In this document: positions 38,973-46,694 of the stretch, one piece after another
How the letters are laid out: every line of letters starts with the position of its first letter
Position numbering within the stretch: position 1 is the stretch's first letter
Assembly: GCA_038496445.1 (NCBI GenBank)
Contig: JALMLS010000056.1
Span: 1 to 64,000, forward strand
DNA length: 64,000 bases
Reading direction: 5' to 3'
Source: Trichosphaerium sp. ATCC 40318
Taxonomy: Eukaryota; Protista; Tubulinea
Made by a program: the position numbers and the translations under genes
Notes under the pieces: model-generated
The model's database searches: none
Told to the model about the DNA's origin: nothing
The model's input: the letters and a program-made list of their open reading frames with translations, nothing else

Positions 38973-40929
38973 TTACTGTTTTTTCTGTAGTTCTGGACGT
39001 AAGTTATGTTCTTCATAGTAGACCTACACAAAGTTTTAAATTCCGGAATGTTTGCAACTTTACTGCACATACCCCACGCAAGTGCCTGTTGCCTGAAAAC
39101 GCATTACGGCCATGAAGCATCCTAAATTGACATGTTAATTTTTTATATCAGCCCAAACCAAAAAAAAAAGACGTACTTGTAGTTATCATAAACAACAAAC
39201 TCTCCTGGATTTAAATCACAACGATATTGATTTTCTGGATTACGAACAAGTCTAGTGAACTTGATATAAGCATCATACCATGTCTCAACGACACCCAAAG
39301 GCTTCTTCTAAAGAAACTGATAAGAGTCTTATCGATTTATGTGTATCAGATTTTGGTTACCAGTGGTGCCATTGTGAAGTACGAGTATCTGATTTGTTTC
39401 AACTCTCCATTATCATCAAGTGATATTATAGGTGCTACTTTTATACTTTCAAAGTTCTTCTGTTTACGATGAAATGTAATCTCTGTGTTTGCTAATACAT
39501 TCAAAGTATGTGGATCATTCTCTTTCAAATAAGAAACAACTAACAAGTATTAAAAACGCGGGTTAGAATCTAGCAAGCTGAGATAGTCACGTGATATTTT
39601 GGTAAGTTATAGTTTGCGAAGAAAGAAGGGCGAAGATTCTTAGGTTGTTACCTTTTCGAATATCAACGAACATATTATCTCCGCCTTTGTCTGCCTTGTT
39701 TATACAATGAAGCATCTGGAATCGCGGAGGGTTTTCAATAAACGGTTGATCAGTGTGTACATCAACAGAGTCATTGGTATATCCGAGTTGATCAGTGTTT
39801 CTAAGCAAAGTGGTAAGTACGAATAGGAAAGAAAATAAGGCGCAGAAAAAAAAAAAAAAACATCACAAGCGACCAGTGTGGTTGTATTTCCTTGCTTACG
39901 CGTTGGTTGTATTTTGTGAAAAATGCATCAAGTCCTCTATTACACCAAAGTGGCTTTTAAAAACCTTTTCTCTGCTCTCAACAAAATCTAGTCTGGGAGA
40001 TTCATTAATAAGTTATAGCATCACGTGATGTCTTTCGACGGTACATTATGGCTTCTGTATCAAGTCCTCTATTTTTAACAATAGCGATGCCATTGTTTCT
40101 TAAGTATTCGCCTACAAGCTCCTAACATAGAGTTACAAAGGTCTTAAAGTGAATAAATATATTACCTGATAGCGTGGATACTCTTTTGCTTTAAAGTCGA
40201 TTGTCTAATCTGCGTCAGAAGAACAAAAGTGCCTAAAAATCGCTTTTTTGAAGAAGATACTAACCACTGTTTTTGGGTCGCACTCTAAACTAGTCCCTCT
40301 TTGAGTGCTTGCATAGTTTGAAAGCCATTCCCAATTATACCTCGATTCGTGAGAATCGTTCCATATTATTGCTAAGCCGTCACTCTGCGCCTCAACTTTT
40401 TGCTAGAACAAAAGAAATAAACAATCACGTTCTATGGAAAAAAGGTAAAAAATAAAATACCGGTGATATATCCCTTCGGATATCAACTGGATCTATAATA
40501 CGCTCGCCAGTATCAGGGTGAAGATTCTTAGGGTTATTACAATTATGCCTATCTAAATTTAAAGGTGCCACGGCGGCGAAAAAGTAATCATAAGCGCTAC
40601 CTTAGCCAAGTGAAGTTAAAATTATAAGCACGTGTTGGATTGGTAGCTTTTTTAGGAGTCAGCGCTATGAATGATGGTTTTACTTTAATGTCTATATTGT
40701 TTGGTGCCATATCAACAAGAGCAGGGCCTTTAGAACCTATAAAAAAGATTACGGTTTTTGAACATTAACGGTTCAAAAAAGCTGTTCATCACATAAATTA
40801 CAATATGTAACGCGTACCTACTGTACTGTAACCAAACGCGCTGGTTCGTACTGTACTGTGTTTGCTAGAATTCGCCACAGATGTCCGTGCGTGGCTACAG
40901 CTAACGTAATAACGCGGAGCATTAAGCAT
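38973..40929 (-). CDS. Gamma-butyrobetaine/trimethyllysine dioxygenase-like (TauD family) 2OG-Fe(II) oxygenase, probably mitochondrial
   Basis: N-domain FTWLRHNC...HPDTGER; QLGYT..VDVHTDQPF.ENPPRFQMLHC...GGDNMFVD; DNYRMLHGRNAFSG.RHLRG.Y. An alternative in-frame ATG lies at 40977. Confidence 0.88.
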
Positions 40930-41180: not shown

Positions 41181-43630
41181 ATGTCTGTGGCGGCTAGAAT
41201 ATTACGTTGCAGGCGATCCAGAGGGTATTGGGATGATATTAGTAAACGCCATGAGTTTGTGGCTGAAGTATGTTATTTAACGTTCACCTTACGCTCACGT
41301 TACCCCAGTTGGCTCAAGACATGTCAATTAAAACGATGGACGCGTGGTACAAAATAAATATTGACAAAATTAGAGAGTACAGTGCTGGTAGCTTAGTACA
41401 GTGCGTTTTAAATACCCTACGCGCGTGTCAATTTATTTGACGCTCTATGAAGGTTATACGGCTACTCAATCCACAAGATGCTTCAACATCTCTACCCTTG
41501 GTACCCTTGGCAAGCTTGGCTATTTGGTAAGTTTATTGCTTGATTATTTCCTTTCGTTGGCTGACCTCTCAGAGCATACACCAAGAAATTGTTGGAAAGA
41601 TGTCGACACTATTTTTGAGTTTGTAAAGGAGGTAGTGGATTGCATTTCGTGTTTCCTTCTTTTTTGCTTACCCCAAGACGAGGTAGAAGCTGAATATAAC
41701 CTCAGAACACTTGATAGCTGGTATGACATTGAACCACATGATGTATTCGCTTTAGGAGGCACAGGGCTAATTACACAGTACGTTGGATAATTTAGTGTAC
41801 AAGCCTTATGTAAAGAATCATGACAAAGTAACAGGCGATTTCCTTCTCTTGTAGAATTTTTAAGGTTTGTTTATTCTGAACATGAATGGCTCCCTTGGAA
41901 ATTTAGTACGTATTTCTTGTTTTTAACGACATAACATGTACTTGGTACATATTTTTATTTATCTATTGCTGTAGAGTCAACGTTACAGATGTTCTGGAAT
42001 GATGAAAGAAATCAACTACAATTTTTACAGAAAGTGAGTAGAAAAAAACAAAGTTGTTTTTTTTGTTCTTCTTGGTGTACTCATGTATGGTCCTACACAA
42101 GGTATCGACACCTCTAGGTATAAGTGAGTTAAAGGATTGGTATCGTGTATCAAAAGAAGACTTTGCAAGGGTAGGAGGTGGTAATCTATTAAACCGGTAA
42201 GTGTTGTTCCTCCTTCATTGGATATTTTACTAAAAACTCGTATCTCTAGTTATGGTGGCTCGGTGTACAATATGTTAAAACATTTATATCCAAATACGAG
42301 ATGGTACAGATGGAGATTTGATTCTCACAAACGTGTATTGAAGAAAAGAACAACACAACCTTTTTGGGACGTCATATCTAACAGGCAAACATGGGTTAGA
42401 AACGTTAGTAATACAAGCGCACTTGACTTTATATCTTATGATTCTTTAAGGCTGAGGAGCAGTTACGAGTACAAGTACAGGATGATTGGTATTGCGTCCA
42501 TACACAAGAATTAATAGACTTGGGAGGCGGACAATTGCTCAAGTACATATTCTTACGTAACTTTTAATTCTCAGTTCCCAATGAAGCAACTACAGTGGTT
42601 CACTCTCAAAGCTTCTTCGGCGTCTATACCCAGAATATGAATGGCAACCATGGAAATTTTGTAAGTGCAAAAAACAGTCACGTGTTGGTAATGGTTGTTG
42701 ACTTTTTTGCTGTAGCCAGAGCTCCTCAGAATTTTTGGCACTCGCAATCAAATGTAAAAACATTTTTGCTCAGTTTAGAAAACAAACTGGATATAAAAAG
42801 CCCAATGAACTGGTATAGCATATCAAGGCGTCAACTAGAGTCTGTAGGAGCGAAATCAATACTTGATTATTGGCCAGCACCTCTAAGAGGAATGTATCCA
42901 AACTACAACTGGAACCTTCTTGAAATTTCTAAACGAGATAAAAGATCCATTCAGAGGTACATTTACTCCTCTGTCTTCGGGTTACACAGGTTCTAACTTG
43001 TATTCTTTCCATAGAGCTTTGCTTCACAGTGTAAAACAGCTTTGTTTTGGATACGTTGTTACACAAGAGTATAAACCTGGCGTATTAATGAGCGAGACTA
43101 CACAGCCTTTAACAGTAGATATTTTTGTTGAAGAGTTAAATTTAGGGTTGGAGTACCAAGGTGCTCAACACTACTTTGATAAGCCGGAAGCATTTGGACC
43201 AGTAATGCGCCAAGAAGCTATTGATACTGAGAAAGATACTTTATGCAGAGCCTTAGGTACCCCGATTAAATCCTCTCAAACGAATACAATCGAGCTTAAT
43301 TCACCTTGTAGGTATCACAATTGTGCCTATTCCTTTCTGGTGGATTCCAGGGGATATAGGTAGTTTAGGTGCAACTATAATGCAATTTAGGTACCTTTGT
43401 AAATAATTTAGCACGTGCACCGTGTACGAGGTTAACTTTTGGATTTAGGAGTGATCTGCATTTCGATGTTGCCGTAGGAAAACAGCCATTGAGACATCGC
43501 TCTGCTGAAGGTACTACCCTTATAGTTATTCGTTTTCTAAGCGCGCATATTTATAGAGCCCAACATGCATAAGTATATGAGCCCTTGTACAGAACCAACC
43601 ATGTCGTTGCGTTACAAACAAATACTGTAA
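41181..43630 (+). CDS. Five ~73-aa Trp-rich helical repeats plus a C-terminal PD-(D/E)xK (Vsr/DUF559/RAP-like) nuclease domain
   Basis: Repeat consensus FW....N...F......L.I....DWY.V.......GGG.LL..Y..S....L...YP...W..W.F; C-domain LTVDIFVEELNLGLEYQGAQHY...D.EK..LC...GITIVPIPFWW; Arg-rich N-terminus MSVAARILRCRRSR. Confidence 0.85.
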
Positions 43631-43906
43631 AATAAAAAACAACATTTATACATCTTGTATTTACACTGCCACAAAAAAGACTGACACCAAATGTAATACG
43701 TAAACCGCGTATAGACATAAAAGGTTATATTTTACTAAAATAATTTGAAGTTTTAAGAGCACTCTTTAATCAGTACAATTCGAGAATTTGACTTCCTTAT
43801 TAGTACCAAAACAAAAACTAGCTTTCATTGAACGACTTGGTTTAAGCTTGTAATTAAGTTCTGAATGTGGATTCAAACGAAAAGGAACAGGAGCAAACGT
43901 AGAAGA

Positions 43907-46694
43907 ATGGGACAAGAGAACTCAAGGCACCAAGAAGACGTAACAGGTTACAGATTAATTCGTTTGTTTTTTGATCAAAAGCTCACTGTTTGATAGGTAT
44001 TGTTGCTGCGACGCGAAGTGGAGACTTAGAGAAGATAAAGCAGCTACTCTCGTACTAATATAAAAGTTTTTTCAACTTCTTTACGTAATTATGCGTAGTG
44101 ATAATCCAGACGTACTCTGGGAAGACGTGCGCGGGGATAGAGGCAATTCTGTGTTACAATTGGCAATACTACTTGGTTTCAACGATTTAGCTTTAGAATT
44201 CATCGGATTGGGTAGATCTTGGCCTTCCAATAACCAGGTATTATAGCGTTGTTTATGTTGTCATCACGCCACCCGTTTGGTTGTGTTAACTGCCTAATTT
44301 GTTTTTAGGGCGCTTATCCTGTGCATACTGCAGCTGAAGTAGGCAACGTAGAGATACTACGGCTTCTTTTAGCAAACATGGATGAAAAACAAGCAGAACA
44401 CCAATTAAACGCGCGAACAGTTCATGGTAGTACACCACTACGCCTCGTACGCATTTTCTGCAAAATTTAACGAAAACTGCGTAACGGGCAAAATTTTCCG
44501 CGACTGTACACCGCGTTACGCAGTAAATTATAACGTCATAGACGGTTTGTAACGTCATAACGTCATAACGTCATTCTCCGCTTTTTAATGATTGATAGTC
44601 AGTTGAACACGAAGCGTGCTTTCTTATGCTGTCTGATGTGTTTGCACAACAAGATTTTGAATTAAAGGTAAGGAAAGGAAGTTCTGTTAATACGTACTTT
44701 ACCATTTTCTTTGTTCTTCTTGAAAAAGTAATAATTTGTGTTTTTAGGATGCTATTGGAGACAGTGTTCTTACAACACTTGTTACAAAGAATAAAATATC
44801 TTTACTGAAAGCATATTTACAAAGGAAACCAGAAATTGATCATGCTGATGTTGAGACGGGGGAGACTGCTGTTGTTGTTGCAACACAGATGGGTCATGAA
44901 GAGTGTCTAAAGTTACTACTTGAAGCAGGAGCTGACGCAAACATGGTAACTAATGATGGTATGGTGTAGTTCTTTTTACTGCAATCGCGATTTTTGCGAT
45001 CCCCAACTTAAGTGGATTGTCAACCCACCGGCTTCTGTCTCATTTTTTTTTAGGCTACCATCCTCTTCATCTTGCTTTACAACGTCTTGAGTACGGTTGT
45101 TTTAGAATATTATTGGAGCATGGTAAGGAGATTACACCTGTTGTATCAACAGTATCAGGTGACTTACCAATGCACTTACTTTTAAAGAGTTGGAATACTG
45201 AAGATGACGTATGGAATTGTTTTTTTATTGATTCTTTCTTATTCTGGATAGGTTGATATGTCACTTGTTGAAACACTTATTTCTATGGAAGTACTTGATG
45301 TGACTCCAAGGAAAACATACACAGAAGGAAAAAATCAGAAAGTTTATTGTTGGAGTTTACTAAGGAAAAATCAATCAAACGAAACGCCGGTATGAGTTTG
45401 TGAAATGTCACATTCTTTTCATCTTTTCTAAAGTTCAATTTAGATTAGTCTATCTCATTCTTTCCCAAGTATAAAGAAGATTTTCTTAGATCACCTTCCC
45501 CAAGGTTATGAAGATATAAACTTGCTGCGTATACAAGTAACAAGTGGTAAGGACCTGTCCAAGAATTATTATCAAATGTTAACTTGTATATCCAAAGATA
45601 TACACTTGGAGTTTGGTCCAGCTGATGAGTTACTAAAACCTTCAGCTCCTTACTTGGCTTTACTTGGGGATATTGGACTCGTATGTGCTAATGAAAAGCA
45701 AACCAAACAGTATGAGGAGCTCATCGATAACACAGCTGCCAAGTTCAAGAAAGTATTTGTTTTGGCCGGTAAGCCTTAATTTTTCCCTCTATTCTTTTAC
45801 TTGTACTCATAATAAACAAGGTAACCACGAATATTATCATGGTGACTTGGATGAAGTAAATAATGTCATTCGTTCTATATGCGAAAAATATGAGAACGTT
45901 GTTTTTCTTCAACGAAATAGTTTTGAAATTGAGGGTAAAACAAAAAAAAACCAATTGAATTCGATGTTTTCAACTAATACCCGTTTTAGGTGTACGTATT
46001 ATAGGATCAACTTTATGGACATATATTCCTGAGAAATCTAGACAGTATTTACAGTATGCAATGAACGATTACAATTGCATAAAAACCAAAGACGAAGGTA
46101 AGAAATTTAGACCTTTCTTTTTTTTCAGATGAATTTTTGTTGCTTGTCCATGATTTTCTTGATGTATTTTAAACTAGCGCGCTTGGTATTAACAAAGGTT
46201 TTTAGAACGAGTTGCTATAAGCCTCAGTCCTGAACATACTATTAAACTACATGAAGAAGACGTAGCTTATTTTAAAGAGGAGATTAAAAAAGCGGCAGAT
46301 GCAAATCAACATGTTATAGCAATGTCACATCATGCGCCTATCACAAAGTTTGGATTTATACAACCAAAAGACGCACCTATAAAAAGTGCTAACGGGTACA
46401 CATCGAAATAATTGCTTTCTAGAAACCAACATCTTATTGTTTTCATAGTACTGACCTTATGCATTTGATGGGTGATAATGTAAAGGCATGGCTTTATGGT
46501 ACGTTTTTGCTAAAAAGTTTTACTGATAAGAGCATGTTCTTGTTAATGTCTCGTTTTAAGGGCACACGCATATGTTTCATGATGGTGTACATAGTGGCAC
46601 ACGTATTGTTACAAACCCTCATGGATACACTACAGAGACTCTTGCTTATCGTAACGATTATGTTGTAGAAATACCGCTTTACAAACAACCTTGA
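43907..46694 (+). CDS. Ankyrin-repeat plus calcineurin-like metallophosphoesterase fusion, N-myristoylation motif MGQENS
   Basis: Ankyrin repeats GAYPVHTAAEVGNVEILRLLL, GETAVVVATQMGHEECLKLLLEAGADAN, GYHPLHLAL; MPP motifs SDIHLE, LGDIG, AGNHEYY, SHHAP, YGHTH, TNPHGY all present. Confidence 0.85.
44531..44574. repeat. Intronic TAACGTCA octamer cluster (CRE-like)
   Basis: Four copies, three of them in direct tandem (TAACGTCATAACGTCATAACGTCAT). Confidence 0.7.

Follow-up and report, generated by a model that had tools for sequence, protein, structure and literature searches.

The window, by which we mean the whole 64,000-nt stretch of Trichosphaerium sp. ATCC 40318 analysed here (positions 1 to 64,000 of contig JALMLS010000056.1), carries on its plus strand, at 41181-43630, a coding region of 16 exons separated by 15 GT-AG introns of 41-69 nt. 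In the spliced model the start ATG lies at 41181, the stop TAA ends at 43630 and the product has 549 residues. A spliced RNA contig of 1649 nt (run X1) spans 41134 to about 43630 with zero mismatches; it matches 14 of the 15 model introns exactly, shifts one acceptor by 6 nt and contains one extra joint. The shifted acceptor belongs to intron 6, which in the contig ends 6 nt upstream of the AG at 41973-41974, replacing K by TVE and adding two residues.

41181-41267, 41309-41400, 41453-41526, 41573-41631, 41683-41777, 41835-41905, 41975-42033, 42102-42196, plus strand: exons 1-8 (spliced model and transcript contig)
42250-42403, 42451-42542, 42587-42660, 42716-42956, 43015-43256, 43312-43390, 43449-43510, 43557-43630, plus strand: exons 9-16 (spliced model and transcript contig)
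41906-41968, plus strand: intron 6 in its transcript-contig version, GT..TG (1649-nt contig)

The locus is a real, expressed, nuclear spliceosomal gene of an amoebozoan. Its flanking genes in the window are unrelated host genes, no second copy or paralogue is present elsewhere in the 64,000 nt, and neither a mobile-element context nor a self-splicing intron or intein is seen around it within the window. Repeats 1-4 of the encoded protein have intron sites at the same three repeat positions and in the same phases, to within one codon, which argues for a long residence in the nuclear genome.

The initial annotation had described a repeat array fused to a PD-(D/E)xK nuclease, and the spliced model reproduces its R3 and R4 strings, its VDIF...LEYQGAQHY...DTEK...GITIVPIPFWW tail, its MSVAARILRCRRSR N-terminus and both of its end coordinates. 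The protein is laid out as follows, the scores of the single repeats (60-83 bits) being those of an HMM that includes the window's own repeats.

41181-41222, plus strand: N-terminal 14 residues MSVAARILRCRRSR, with four Arg and zero Asp or Glu (spliced model)
41223-41525, plus strand: repeat 1 (aa 15-84), repeat HMM 77.4 bits
41526-41904, plus strand: repeat 2 (aa 85-159), acidic, net charge -7, repeat HMM 61.4 bits
41905-42319, plus strand: repeat 3 (aa 160-234), net charge +6, repeat HMM 82.8 bits
42320-42659, plus strand: repeat 4 (aa 235-317), with a basic linker of 8 residues, repeat HMM 78.5 bits
42660-42927, plus strand: repeat 5 (aa 318-388), a shortened terminal unit, repeat HMM 60.2 bits
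42928-43497, plus strand: predicted Vsr/DUF559-like PD-(D/E)xK domain (aa 389-521), exons 12-15, family nuclease HMM 136.6 bits
43498-43627, plus strand: last 28 residues (aa 522-549), a C-terminal tail without conservation in the family (family alignment)

The five Trp-rich repeats, 70-83 residues long, are 18-36% identical in pairwise comparison and hold W, WY, G, L, YP and W positions invariant. Repeat 5 lacks the GG..LL..Y motif and lies almost entirely inside exon 12; a degenerate last repeat adjoining the nuclease is kept across the family. With an HMM built from the repeats of other proteins only, the window protein reaches 321.9 bits and the best of 200 shuffles 6.6 bits. Members of the family differ mainly in repeat number, from 1 to 13.

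To what known module is this repeat related? Structure and Pfam work used window exon pieces and the closest homologues, and folds were predicted for the homologues. The model of a repeat pair from P0018 (residues 88-242; pLDDT 96.2, pTM 0.86) shows a five-helix unit and superposes on three DUF4046 clusters with TM 0.78-0.81 and an rmsd of 1.7-2.7 A over 138-152 residues; one of these clusters has PF13255 in 100% of its members. Pfam DUF4046 (PF13255) finds zero matches on the window exon pieces or on 10 relatives, and its gathering score of 22.8 bits is reached by no sequence searched. Sub-threshold matches, collinear with one repeat unit, occur in P0129 (14.0 bits) and P0150 (19.9 bits), and 2 of 58 repeat pairs match DUF4046, at E 0.03. 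On the strength of the models, the repeat is probably a DUF4046-like five-helix module. The view that it differs from PPR, OPR, TALE and PUF is borne out, the unit being a five-helix module of 70-75 residues. The description as a distinct scaffold has to be qualified, since the unit superposes on DUF4046 proteins.

Among solved structures the repeat has no significant relative (best Z 4.3, to generic helix-turn-helix domains), so that nucleic-acid binding by the array is something we infer. The BFVD viral structure library gave nothing useful for the repeat. The I..nGG..LL..Y segment was considered as a helix-hairpin-helix and dropped, since the searches returned no HhH protein or Pfam family. 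In an entropy profile of 568 repeats, high variability extends across the exposed sides of helices 1, 3, 4 and 5, namely at positions 14, 18, 36-38, 40-41, 45-46, 49-50, 56-57 and 60-61. Per-position variability had been expected to reveal specificity residues; the variation is diffuse instead, and the profile contains no hypervariable hotspot of one or two positions, a result compatible with a more complex code.

The nuclease, read in the genomic frame, keeps every residue that is conserved across the family.

43118-43120, plus strand: D433 codon (VDIF; family consensus ELDIF), the Asp invariant in the family (family alignment A1)
43151-43171, plus strand: E444-Y-Q-G-A-Q-H450, the E-x-Q-G-x-x-H motif (family alignment A1)
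43223-43234, plus strand: D468-T-E-K471, family motif RDxEK (family alignment A1)
43092-43145, plus strand: 54-nt segment spliced out, GC..AG, in frame (joint 43091 to 43146 in the transcript contig)

Across 60 family sequences D433, G, H and K never vary, and E, Y, P, W and the D of the RDxEK motif are kept in at least 90%. The fold predicted for the closest relative, P0012 (pLDDT 82.8), has an alpha-beta-beta-beta-alpha-beta core that matches I-Bth0305I (3r3p), Vsr (1cw0) and the DUF559 protein 3hrl at Z 8.3, the Toxoplasma gondii mitoribosome protein 9g6k_L9 at Z 8.5 and the FASTKD4 RAP module at Z 7.9. The top Foldseek rows are mitoribosomal helical-repeat proteins. Because these values (Z 7.9-8.5) are tied, the fold cannot separate Vsr and DUF559, which act on DNA, from RAP, which acts on RNA. 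Comparison of the family profile with the DUF559-positive tail of P0145 by hhalign gives a probability of 95.5% and E 1.4e-8. Pfam at threshold found nothing on the window exon pieces or 20 relatives; DUF559 (PF04480) has no direct match on the window exon or close relatives, and RAP (PF08373) has none at E<=1 on the window pieces and 10 relatives and none at E<=0.01 on 10 others. PDB sequence searches with the exon and with the family profile returned nothing meaningful. By its predicted fold, the domain is a PD-(D/E)xK domain of the Vsr/DUF559/I-Bth0305I/RAP type, with a predicted endonuclease role. Alignment, the P0012 fold and hhalign together uphold the initial proposal of a modular helical-repeat array carrying a Vsr/DUF559/RAP-type domain with conserved catalytic residues.

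The window's full-length protein is absent from database matches, the best exon-level match being 57% identical. It belongs to a large family. P0092 is collinear with it over the full length, repeats first and nuclease behind (blastp E 5.5e-75), and P0018, P0023 and P0012 are likewise collinear at 34-36% identity. Amoebozoan members occur in Physarum and Cavostelium, in keeping with the initial annotation's mention of similar proteins in other amoebae, and P0145 lies on a gene-dense, giant-virus-like contig. P0046, P0071 and P0094 combine repeats and nuclease with PF01068, at 48.9 and 41 bits in the first two, which pass the cut-off of 26.2, and at 23.5 bits, below it, in P0094. The tail of P0046 matches Lig E-type DNA ligases at E 7e-29. 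Judged by these sequence matches, the nuclease is followed in some of the family by a bona fide ATP-dependent DNA ligase. Among predicted structures, the nearest clusters consist of proteins from phages, giant viruses and Bacillota, and several of them have DUF723, DUF4379 or DUF2726. NCBIfam gave no useful match. In tblastn searches against phage genomes the repeats were absent, and the sole match was the nuclease tail of P0152, in jumbo phages. A full-text literature search found no paper mentioning DUF4046, and the literature on RAP and helical-repeat proteins yielded nothing describing the repeat-nuclease family; as far as the literature was searched, we found no published study of it.

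What might such a protein do? In the explanation that we consider best, and to which we give an even chance of being right, five DUF4046-like modules are joined to a DUF559/Vsr-type endonuclease domain: the array would dock the protein at a given site or structure of a nucleic acid, where the nuclease would nick or cut, more likely in DNA. Two things make us favour DNA over RNA, with modest confidence: the ligase fusions, and structural neighbours that come from phages, giant viruses and bacteria. For the window member mitochondrial DNA is our leading guess, because its N-terminus is short, Arg-rich and acid-free; MSVAARILRCRRSR is a possible short mitochondrial presequence. N-termini in the family are mixed, some presequence-like, some acidic and some resembling nuclear localisation signals. 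The strongly acidic repeat 2 (net charge -7) counts against the explanation.

Could the substrate be an organellar RNA instead? An RNA-processing or RNA-capping factor of the RAP type, whose array reads a mitochondrial transcript while the Vsr-like domain cleaves or holds the RNA end, is to our judgement rather unlikely, although 9g6k_L9 and the FASTKD4 RAP module match the predicted fold as well as Vsr does and mitoribosomal proteins lead the Foldseek rows. A large nuclear family of helical-repeat proteins that differ in repeat number is typical of organellar RNA factors, as is established for PPR, OPR and HPR, and the Arg-rich, acid-free N-terminus of the window protein fits such a factor, as does a faint RAP match (14.7 bits) on one alternative-tail family member. 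The Pfam RAP model, however, is unmatched on the window pieces and 20 relatives, the DNA-ligase fusions argue for DNA, and many N-termini of the family are not presequence-like; moreover, neither the members on a giant-virus-like contig nor the bacterial proteins that share the repeat fold would have an organelle to act in.

Improbable, in our view, is a cytoplasmic or nuclear DNA-targeting conflict nuclease, be it one that defends the amoeba against giant viruses in a restriction-like manner or a free-standing homing-type endonuclease that has been domesticated. In its favour, a giant-virus-like context also contains these repeats joined to tails of the DUF559 or Vsr type, the homing endonuclease I-Bth0305I has a matching fold, a weak structural resemblance (TM 0.40-0.52) links the array to clusters with the homing-endonuclease-associated HNH_repeat, and a large, variable paralogue family would fit an arms race. 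But no PADLOC anti-phage defence model matches, the window gene is an ordinary 16-exon nuclear gene amid unrelated host genes, with no mobile context and no paralogue in the window, and the intron positions common to its repeats point to long nuclear residence.

The new point at this locus is that its sole transcript contig removes the catalytic Asp strand, a strand conserved in relatives. The 54-nt splice swaps S424-G442 (SETTQPLTVDIFVEELNLG) for a single Arg, so that D433, encoded in the genome, is lost together with the beta-2 strand. The nuclease that had been called intact is so in the genomic reading frame and not in the sampled mRNA. The skip is seen in one contig, with a depth of 14, from a single sample, and minor isoforms are lost from contigs; no run listed contains 31-mers of the retained form. 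A reverse-transcriptase template-switch artefact is disfavoured by a microhomology of 1 nt only and by the GC..AG ends; nor could assembly from 31-mers easily produce a 54-nt deletion unless each end carried a long repeat. The skipped segment is conserved as coding in L001 and L002, and the acceptor AG is missing in both. Where the mRNA lacks the catalytic strand, as in the sample, this paralogue would give a binding-only or unstable protein, unless an isoform retaining the segment exists. That the paralogue is a non-catalytic derivative, its 54-nt segment removed as an intron and its product binding without cutting or unstable, fits the GC..AG skip in the single contig and the missing retained-form 31-mers, yet we think it very unlikely, since the reading frame stays open through the segment and its sequence follows the family consensus (L001 has the identical residue at 10 of 19 positions, the other differences being mostly conservative), L001 and L002 lack the acceptor AG, the evidence is a single contig in which minor isoforms would be dropped, and loss of beta-2 would probably leave an unfolded domain and not a neat binding protein. 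The splicing-out of the strand raises the possibility that nuclease activity at this locus is switched by splicing.

Returning to the docking endonuclease that we prefer, a bolder extension is a long shot: the family could perform a protein-guided cut-and-reseal, in which arrays read sites in the organelle or nuclear genome or in transcripts, the Vsr-type domain nicks and ligase-bearing members reseal, or else a biased very-short-patch repair. In either case a decipherable repeat-to-sequence code might exist that could be used for engineering. Repeat arrays that direct an enzyme to selected nucleic-acid sites, such as TALE, PPR and PUF, have taught much biology and have served as tools. The module of the window family is another one, of 70 residues; it is coupled to a predicted Vsr-type nuclease that retains the catalytic residues, and some relatives have a DNA ligase besides. 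Were the family's targets known, some of the upkeep of amoebal organelles or genomes might be explained, and it could be judged whether the array is a new module for the recognition of DNA or RNA by proteins.

How does the family compare with known systems? The DUF4046 (PF13255) proteins of bacteria and amoebae resemble it in the five-helix unit and in inter-unit packing, as modelled for P0018; they differ in that their Pfam model stays below the gathering score on every sequence searched, and DUF4046 itself is without known function. In bacterial HNH endonucleases, the 'homing endonuclease associated repeat' (PF18780) likewise places tandem small helical modules before a nuclease (TM 0.40-0.52), but theirs belongs to another superfamily, HNH, and the similarity is below the level that would indicate common descent. 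With TALE and PPR arrays the family shares only the idea of a variable number of tandem modules delivering an effector domain; its unit is twice as long, and no hypervariable site of one or two residues is seen. Unlike homing endonuclease genes, the window gene is spliceosomal, has 16 exons, lies between unrelated genes and has no second copy in the window; I-Bth0305I sits within an intron or intein (PMC3239194).

Vsr, DUF559 proteins and I-Bth0305I (EDxHD) have the same alpha-beta-beta-beta-alpha-beta core (Z 8.3), and D51 and H69 of Vsr compare with an Asp-to-His spacing of 17 residues in the window family. The family differs from them in having Q for D in E-x-D-G-x-x-H, in ending with a family-specific IPYWWD, and in being fused to long helical-repeat arrays in multi-intron eukaryotic genes. 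Of the same design are the RAP proteins (FASTK, OPR-RAP, HPR-RAP and the Toxoplasma mitoribosomal proteins), expanded nuclear families in which a helical-repeat array precedes a C-terminal Vsr-like domain and whose fold matches at Z 7.9-8.5. Their unit is a helical hairpin of 35-40 residues, whereas the window family has a five-helix module of 70-75 residues, leaves Pfam RAP unmatched and includes members that carry a DNA ligase. FASTKD4 has lost the equivalent of the His, tolerates mutation of its putative catalytic Asp without effect and appears inactive (PMC11879112); in the window family, by contrast, Asp and His are both invariant.

Does the gene at 41181-43630 (+) encode one continuous protein? 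A long open reading frame is absent from this region, and pieces of a single protein are spread over three frames. Joining them at GT-AG boundaries yields 16 exons, separated by 15 introns (41-69 nt) and encoding 549 residues; R3, R4 and the nuclease motifs appear in this product just as the initial annotation read them from the sequence. X1, a public sequencing run of about 18 Mb available solely as contigs, is evidently a transcriptome. In it the gene is represented by a single contig of 1649 nt, running from 41134 to about the stop codon. Because this contig has no mismatches and is spliced exactly at 14 of the 15 model introns, the gene is real and expressed. Intron 6 is instead removed as GT..TG (41906-41968), ending 6 nt upstream of the model's AG (41974) and adding two residues to the product. 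Non-canonical junctions thus number two of 16 in the contig, the other being a GC..AG joint across 43092-43145. Since the TAA that ends the frame is partly shared with an AATAAA(AAA) stretch (43625-43640) and transcript coverage stops at about 43631, the 3' UTR appears almost absent. The 5' start of the contig (41134) is a two-codon mini-ORF, ATG-TTT-TGA. No paralogue was found elsewhere within the 64-kb window.

The flanking ORFs have no relation to the repeat-nuclease gene. Upstream fragments (39346-39808, -) resemble a TauD/gamma-butyrobetaine-hydroxylase-type dioxygenase (HTDQPF...FQMLHC...GGDNMFVD), and downstream ORFs around 45017-45256 look ankyrin-like. CACGTG is the single outlier hexamer of the window (z 9.8, maximal-order Markov model). 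It occurs 49 times across 1-64000, where 10.4 are expected (sd 3.3) and none of 100 shuffles exceeded 22; TCACGTGA is favoured. Examples within the gene lie at 42679-42684 (intron 11) and 43412-43417 (intron 14). The excess could stem from a regulatory box in common use or from biased repair or conversion.

The product carries five consecutive repeats ahead of the nuclease domain:

R1, residues 15-84
R2, residues 85-159
R3, residues 160-234
R4, residues 235-317
R5, residues 318-388

The proposed array on a fixed Trp-rich scaffold is borne out: pairwise identity among R1-R5 is 18-36%, and W, WY, G, L, YP and W stand at fixed places in all of them. Under an HMM built exclusively from repeats of other proteins, the window protein reaches 321.9 bits and the highest-scoring of 200 shuffles 6.6; once the window's own repeats are included, each of R1-R5 scores 60-83 bits. 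In R1-R4 introns recur at the same three places, namely in phase 0 after profile position 18, in phase 2 at position 49 or 50, and in phase 1 directly behind the closing F. This recurrence shows that the array expanded by duplication of a three-exon block within a nuclear genome. R5 lies almost entirely inside one exon. R2 is acidic (net charge -7) and R3-R5 are basic; as had been described, the N-terminal stretch MSVAARILRCRRSR is rich in Arg and lacks acidic residues.

Across 60 aligned nuclease domains the consensus reads ELDIFIPxLNLAxEYQGEQHYxD...RDxEK...GIxLIxIPYWWD; D, G, H and K never vary, and conservation is >=90% at E, Y, D, P and W. Direct matches were absent from Pfam, PDB sequences, NCBIfam and PADLOC when exon pieces, relatives or the family profile were searched. 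For P0012, the closest relative, which carries two repeats and the nuclease, AlphaFold predicts an alpha-beta-beta-beta-alpha-beta core (pLDDT 82.8, pTM 0.71). In a comparison with representative structures, the best matches of this model tie at Z 8.3-8.5: a T. gondii mitoribosome protein, the nucleases I-Bth0305I and Vsr, and the DUF559 protein 3hrl, followed by the FASTKD4 RAP module at Z 7.9. The family profile also aligns with the DUF559-positive tail of another relative, P0145 (95.5% probability, E 1.4e-8); the two Asp residues fall opposite each other, as do EYQGxQH and ELDGSQH. Because of these structural ties and this profile alignment, the window nuclease is predicted to be a DUF559/Vsr-clade PD-(D/E)xK domain with Q in place of the usual D, in keeping with the Vsr/DUF559/RAP type first suggested from its motif residues.

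Is the nuclease intact, as initially stated? The genomic frame holds all conserved residues (D433, E444-H450, D468-K471, P484-W489), but the X1 contig contains an extra joint beyond the gene model, 43091 to 43146, which takes out 54 nt in frame with GC..AG ends. Removal replaces S424-G442 with a single Arg and deletes D433 and the whole beta-2 strand. The 54 nt are not decayed intron: they fit the family consensus, and two related genomic contigs, L001 and L002 (57% and 52% identical over the exon), retain them as coding sequence and lack the acceptor AG. No 31-mers of the retained form, an mRNA keeping 43092-43145, were found among the runs listed. The genome thus encodes an intact nuclease, whereas the sole RNA on record (one contig, one sample) encodes a core-deleted version.

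A search of 1.84 billion representatives with the 80-residue nuclease exon matched 103 proteins at E <= 1e-3, the best 57% identical; the window protein's own entry was not among them. A further search added 50 members. Nearly all long matches contain the same repeat, in 1-13 copies. The window protein is collinear over its full length with P0092 (E 5.5e-75) and with P0018, P0023 and P0012 (34-36% identity). Among the sources with a name are transcriptomes of Physarum polycephalum and Cavostelium apophysatum, in line with the initial suggestion of similar proteins in other amoebae, and one MMETSP transcript. The related gene at L001:850-3150 (ENA ERZ25072490 contig) shares its exon layout with the window gene. 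Its product becomes less like the window protein with distance from the C-terminus (identity in the nuclease exon 57%, R5 64%, R4 51%, R1-R3 <=30%), a pattern explained either by much faster evolution of the N-terminal repeats or by this gene being a paralogue. P0002, P0006 and P0087 have two nuclease domains each and may be fused tandem genes. P0150 and P0152 join the repeats to a Vsr-type tail with E.HG.FWHG, and P0145 combines four repeats with its Pfam-positive DUF559 tail:

L003:8001-9335, P0145 gene (NCBI assembly GCA_013572995.1, contig JACCDX011114240.1)

Its surroundings are gene-dense and apparently intronless, with closely packed, mostly ORFan genes; GIY-YIG, NUDIX, AAA and ResIII genes lie nearby. 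This looks like giant-virus DNA within a eukaryote assembly.

A two-unit repeat model (P0018:88-242; pLDDT 96.2, pTM 0.86) has five helices per unit. Among solved structures the best match reaches only Z 4.3, to generic HTH-like domains (TetR N-domains, LOTUS, Slx4 CCD) that we take as a common helical arrangement and no more. The proposal of a distinct scaffold has to be qualified, as among ESM Atlas predicted structures the model superposes on three 'DUF4046' clusters (TM 0.78-0.81), one of them bacterial with PF13255 in all members; homing-endonuclease-associated HNH_repeat clusters come next (TM 0.40-0.52). The Pfam DUF4046 model stayed below threshold on relatives and repeat pairs. The description that best suits the repeat, judged from these models, is that of a divergent relative of DUF4046 at the level of structure; for DUF4046 itself we know of no function. 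In the literature library that was covered, searches found no paper on DUF4046 and none describing the repeat-nuclease family.

Among 568 repeats, the hydrophobic core and N11, Q12, D30, W31, G43, G44, Y51, Y63, P64 and W68 are conserved. High entropy is distributed across the exposed faces of helices 1, 3, 4 and 5, with no TALE-like or PPR-like hotspot, and no repeat code was found.

What would such a protein cut? By structure alone, the domain could be either a DNA enzyme like Vsr or I-Bth0305I or a RAP domain associated with RNA. In P0046, P0071 and P0094, repeats and nuclease are followed in one polypeptide by an ATP-dependent DNA ligase adenylation domain and an OB fold; PF01068 scores 48.9 and 41 bits in the first two and 23.5, just under the 26.2 cut-off, in the third, and minimal DNA ligases of the Lig E type match the tail of P0046 at E 7e-29. 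The repeat-plus-nuclease model lies closest to predicted-structure clusters of phage, giant-virus and Bacillota proteins, a number of them with DUF723, DUF4379 or DUF2726. The ligase fusions, these neighbours and the member on a giant-virus-like contig tilt the probable substrate toward DNA over RNA, with a RAP-like reading as the alternative. N-termini are mixed across the family, and mitochondrial targeting would be a reasonable guess for the window member only.

The initial observation is therefore confirmed and its interpretation partly supported: the architecture holds. In design the family is closest to RAP-type helical-repeat proteins, and in its catalytic domain to DUF559, Vsr and I-Bth0305I; its repeat is DUF4046-like and, unlike those of TALE and PPR proteins, has no single variable hotspot. 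The repeat-nuclease family keeps both Asp and His, in contrast to FASTKD4, in which the equivalent of the His is lost and which appears inactive (PMC11879112).
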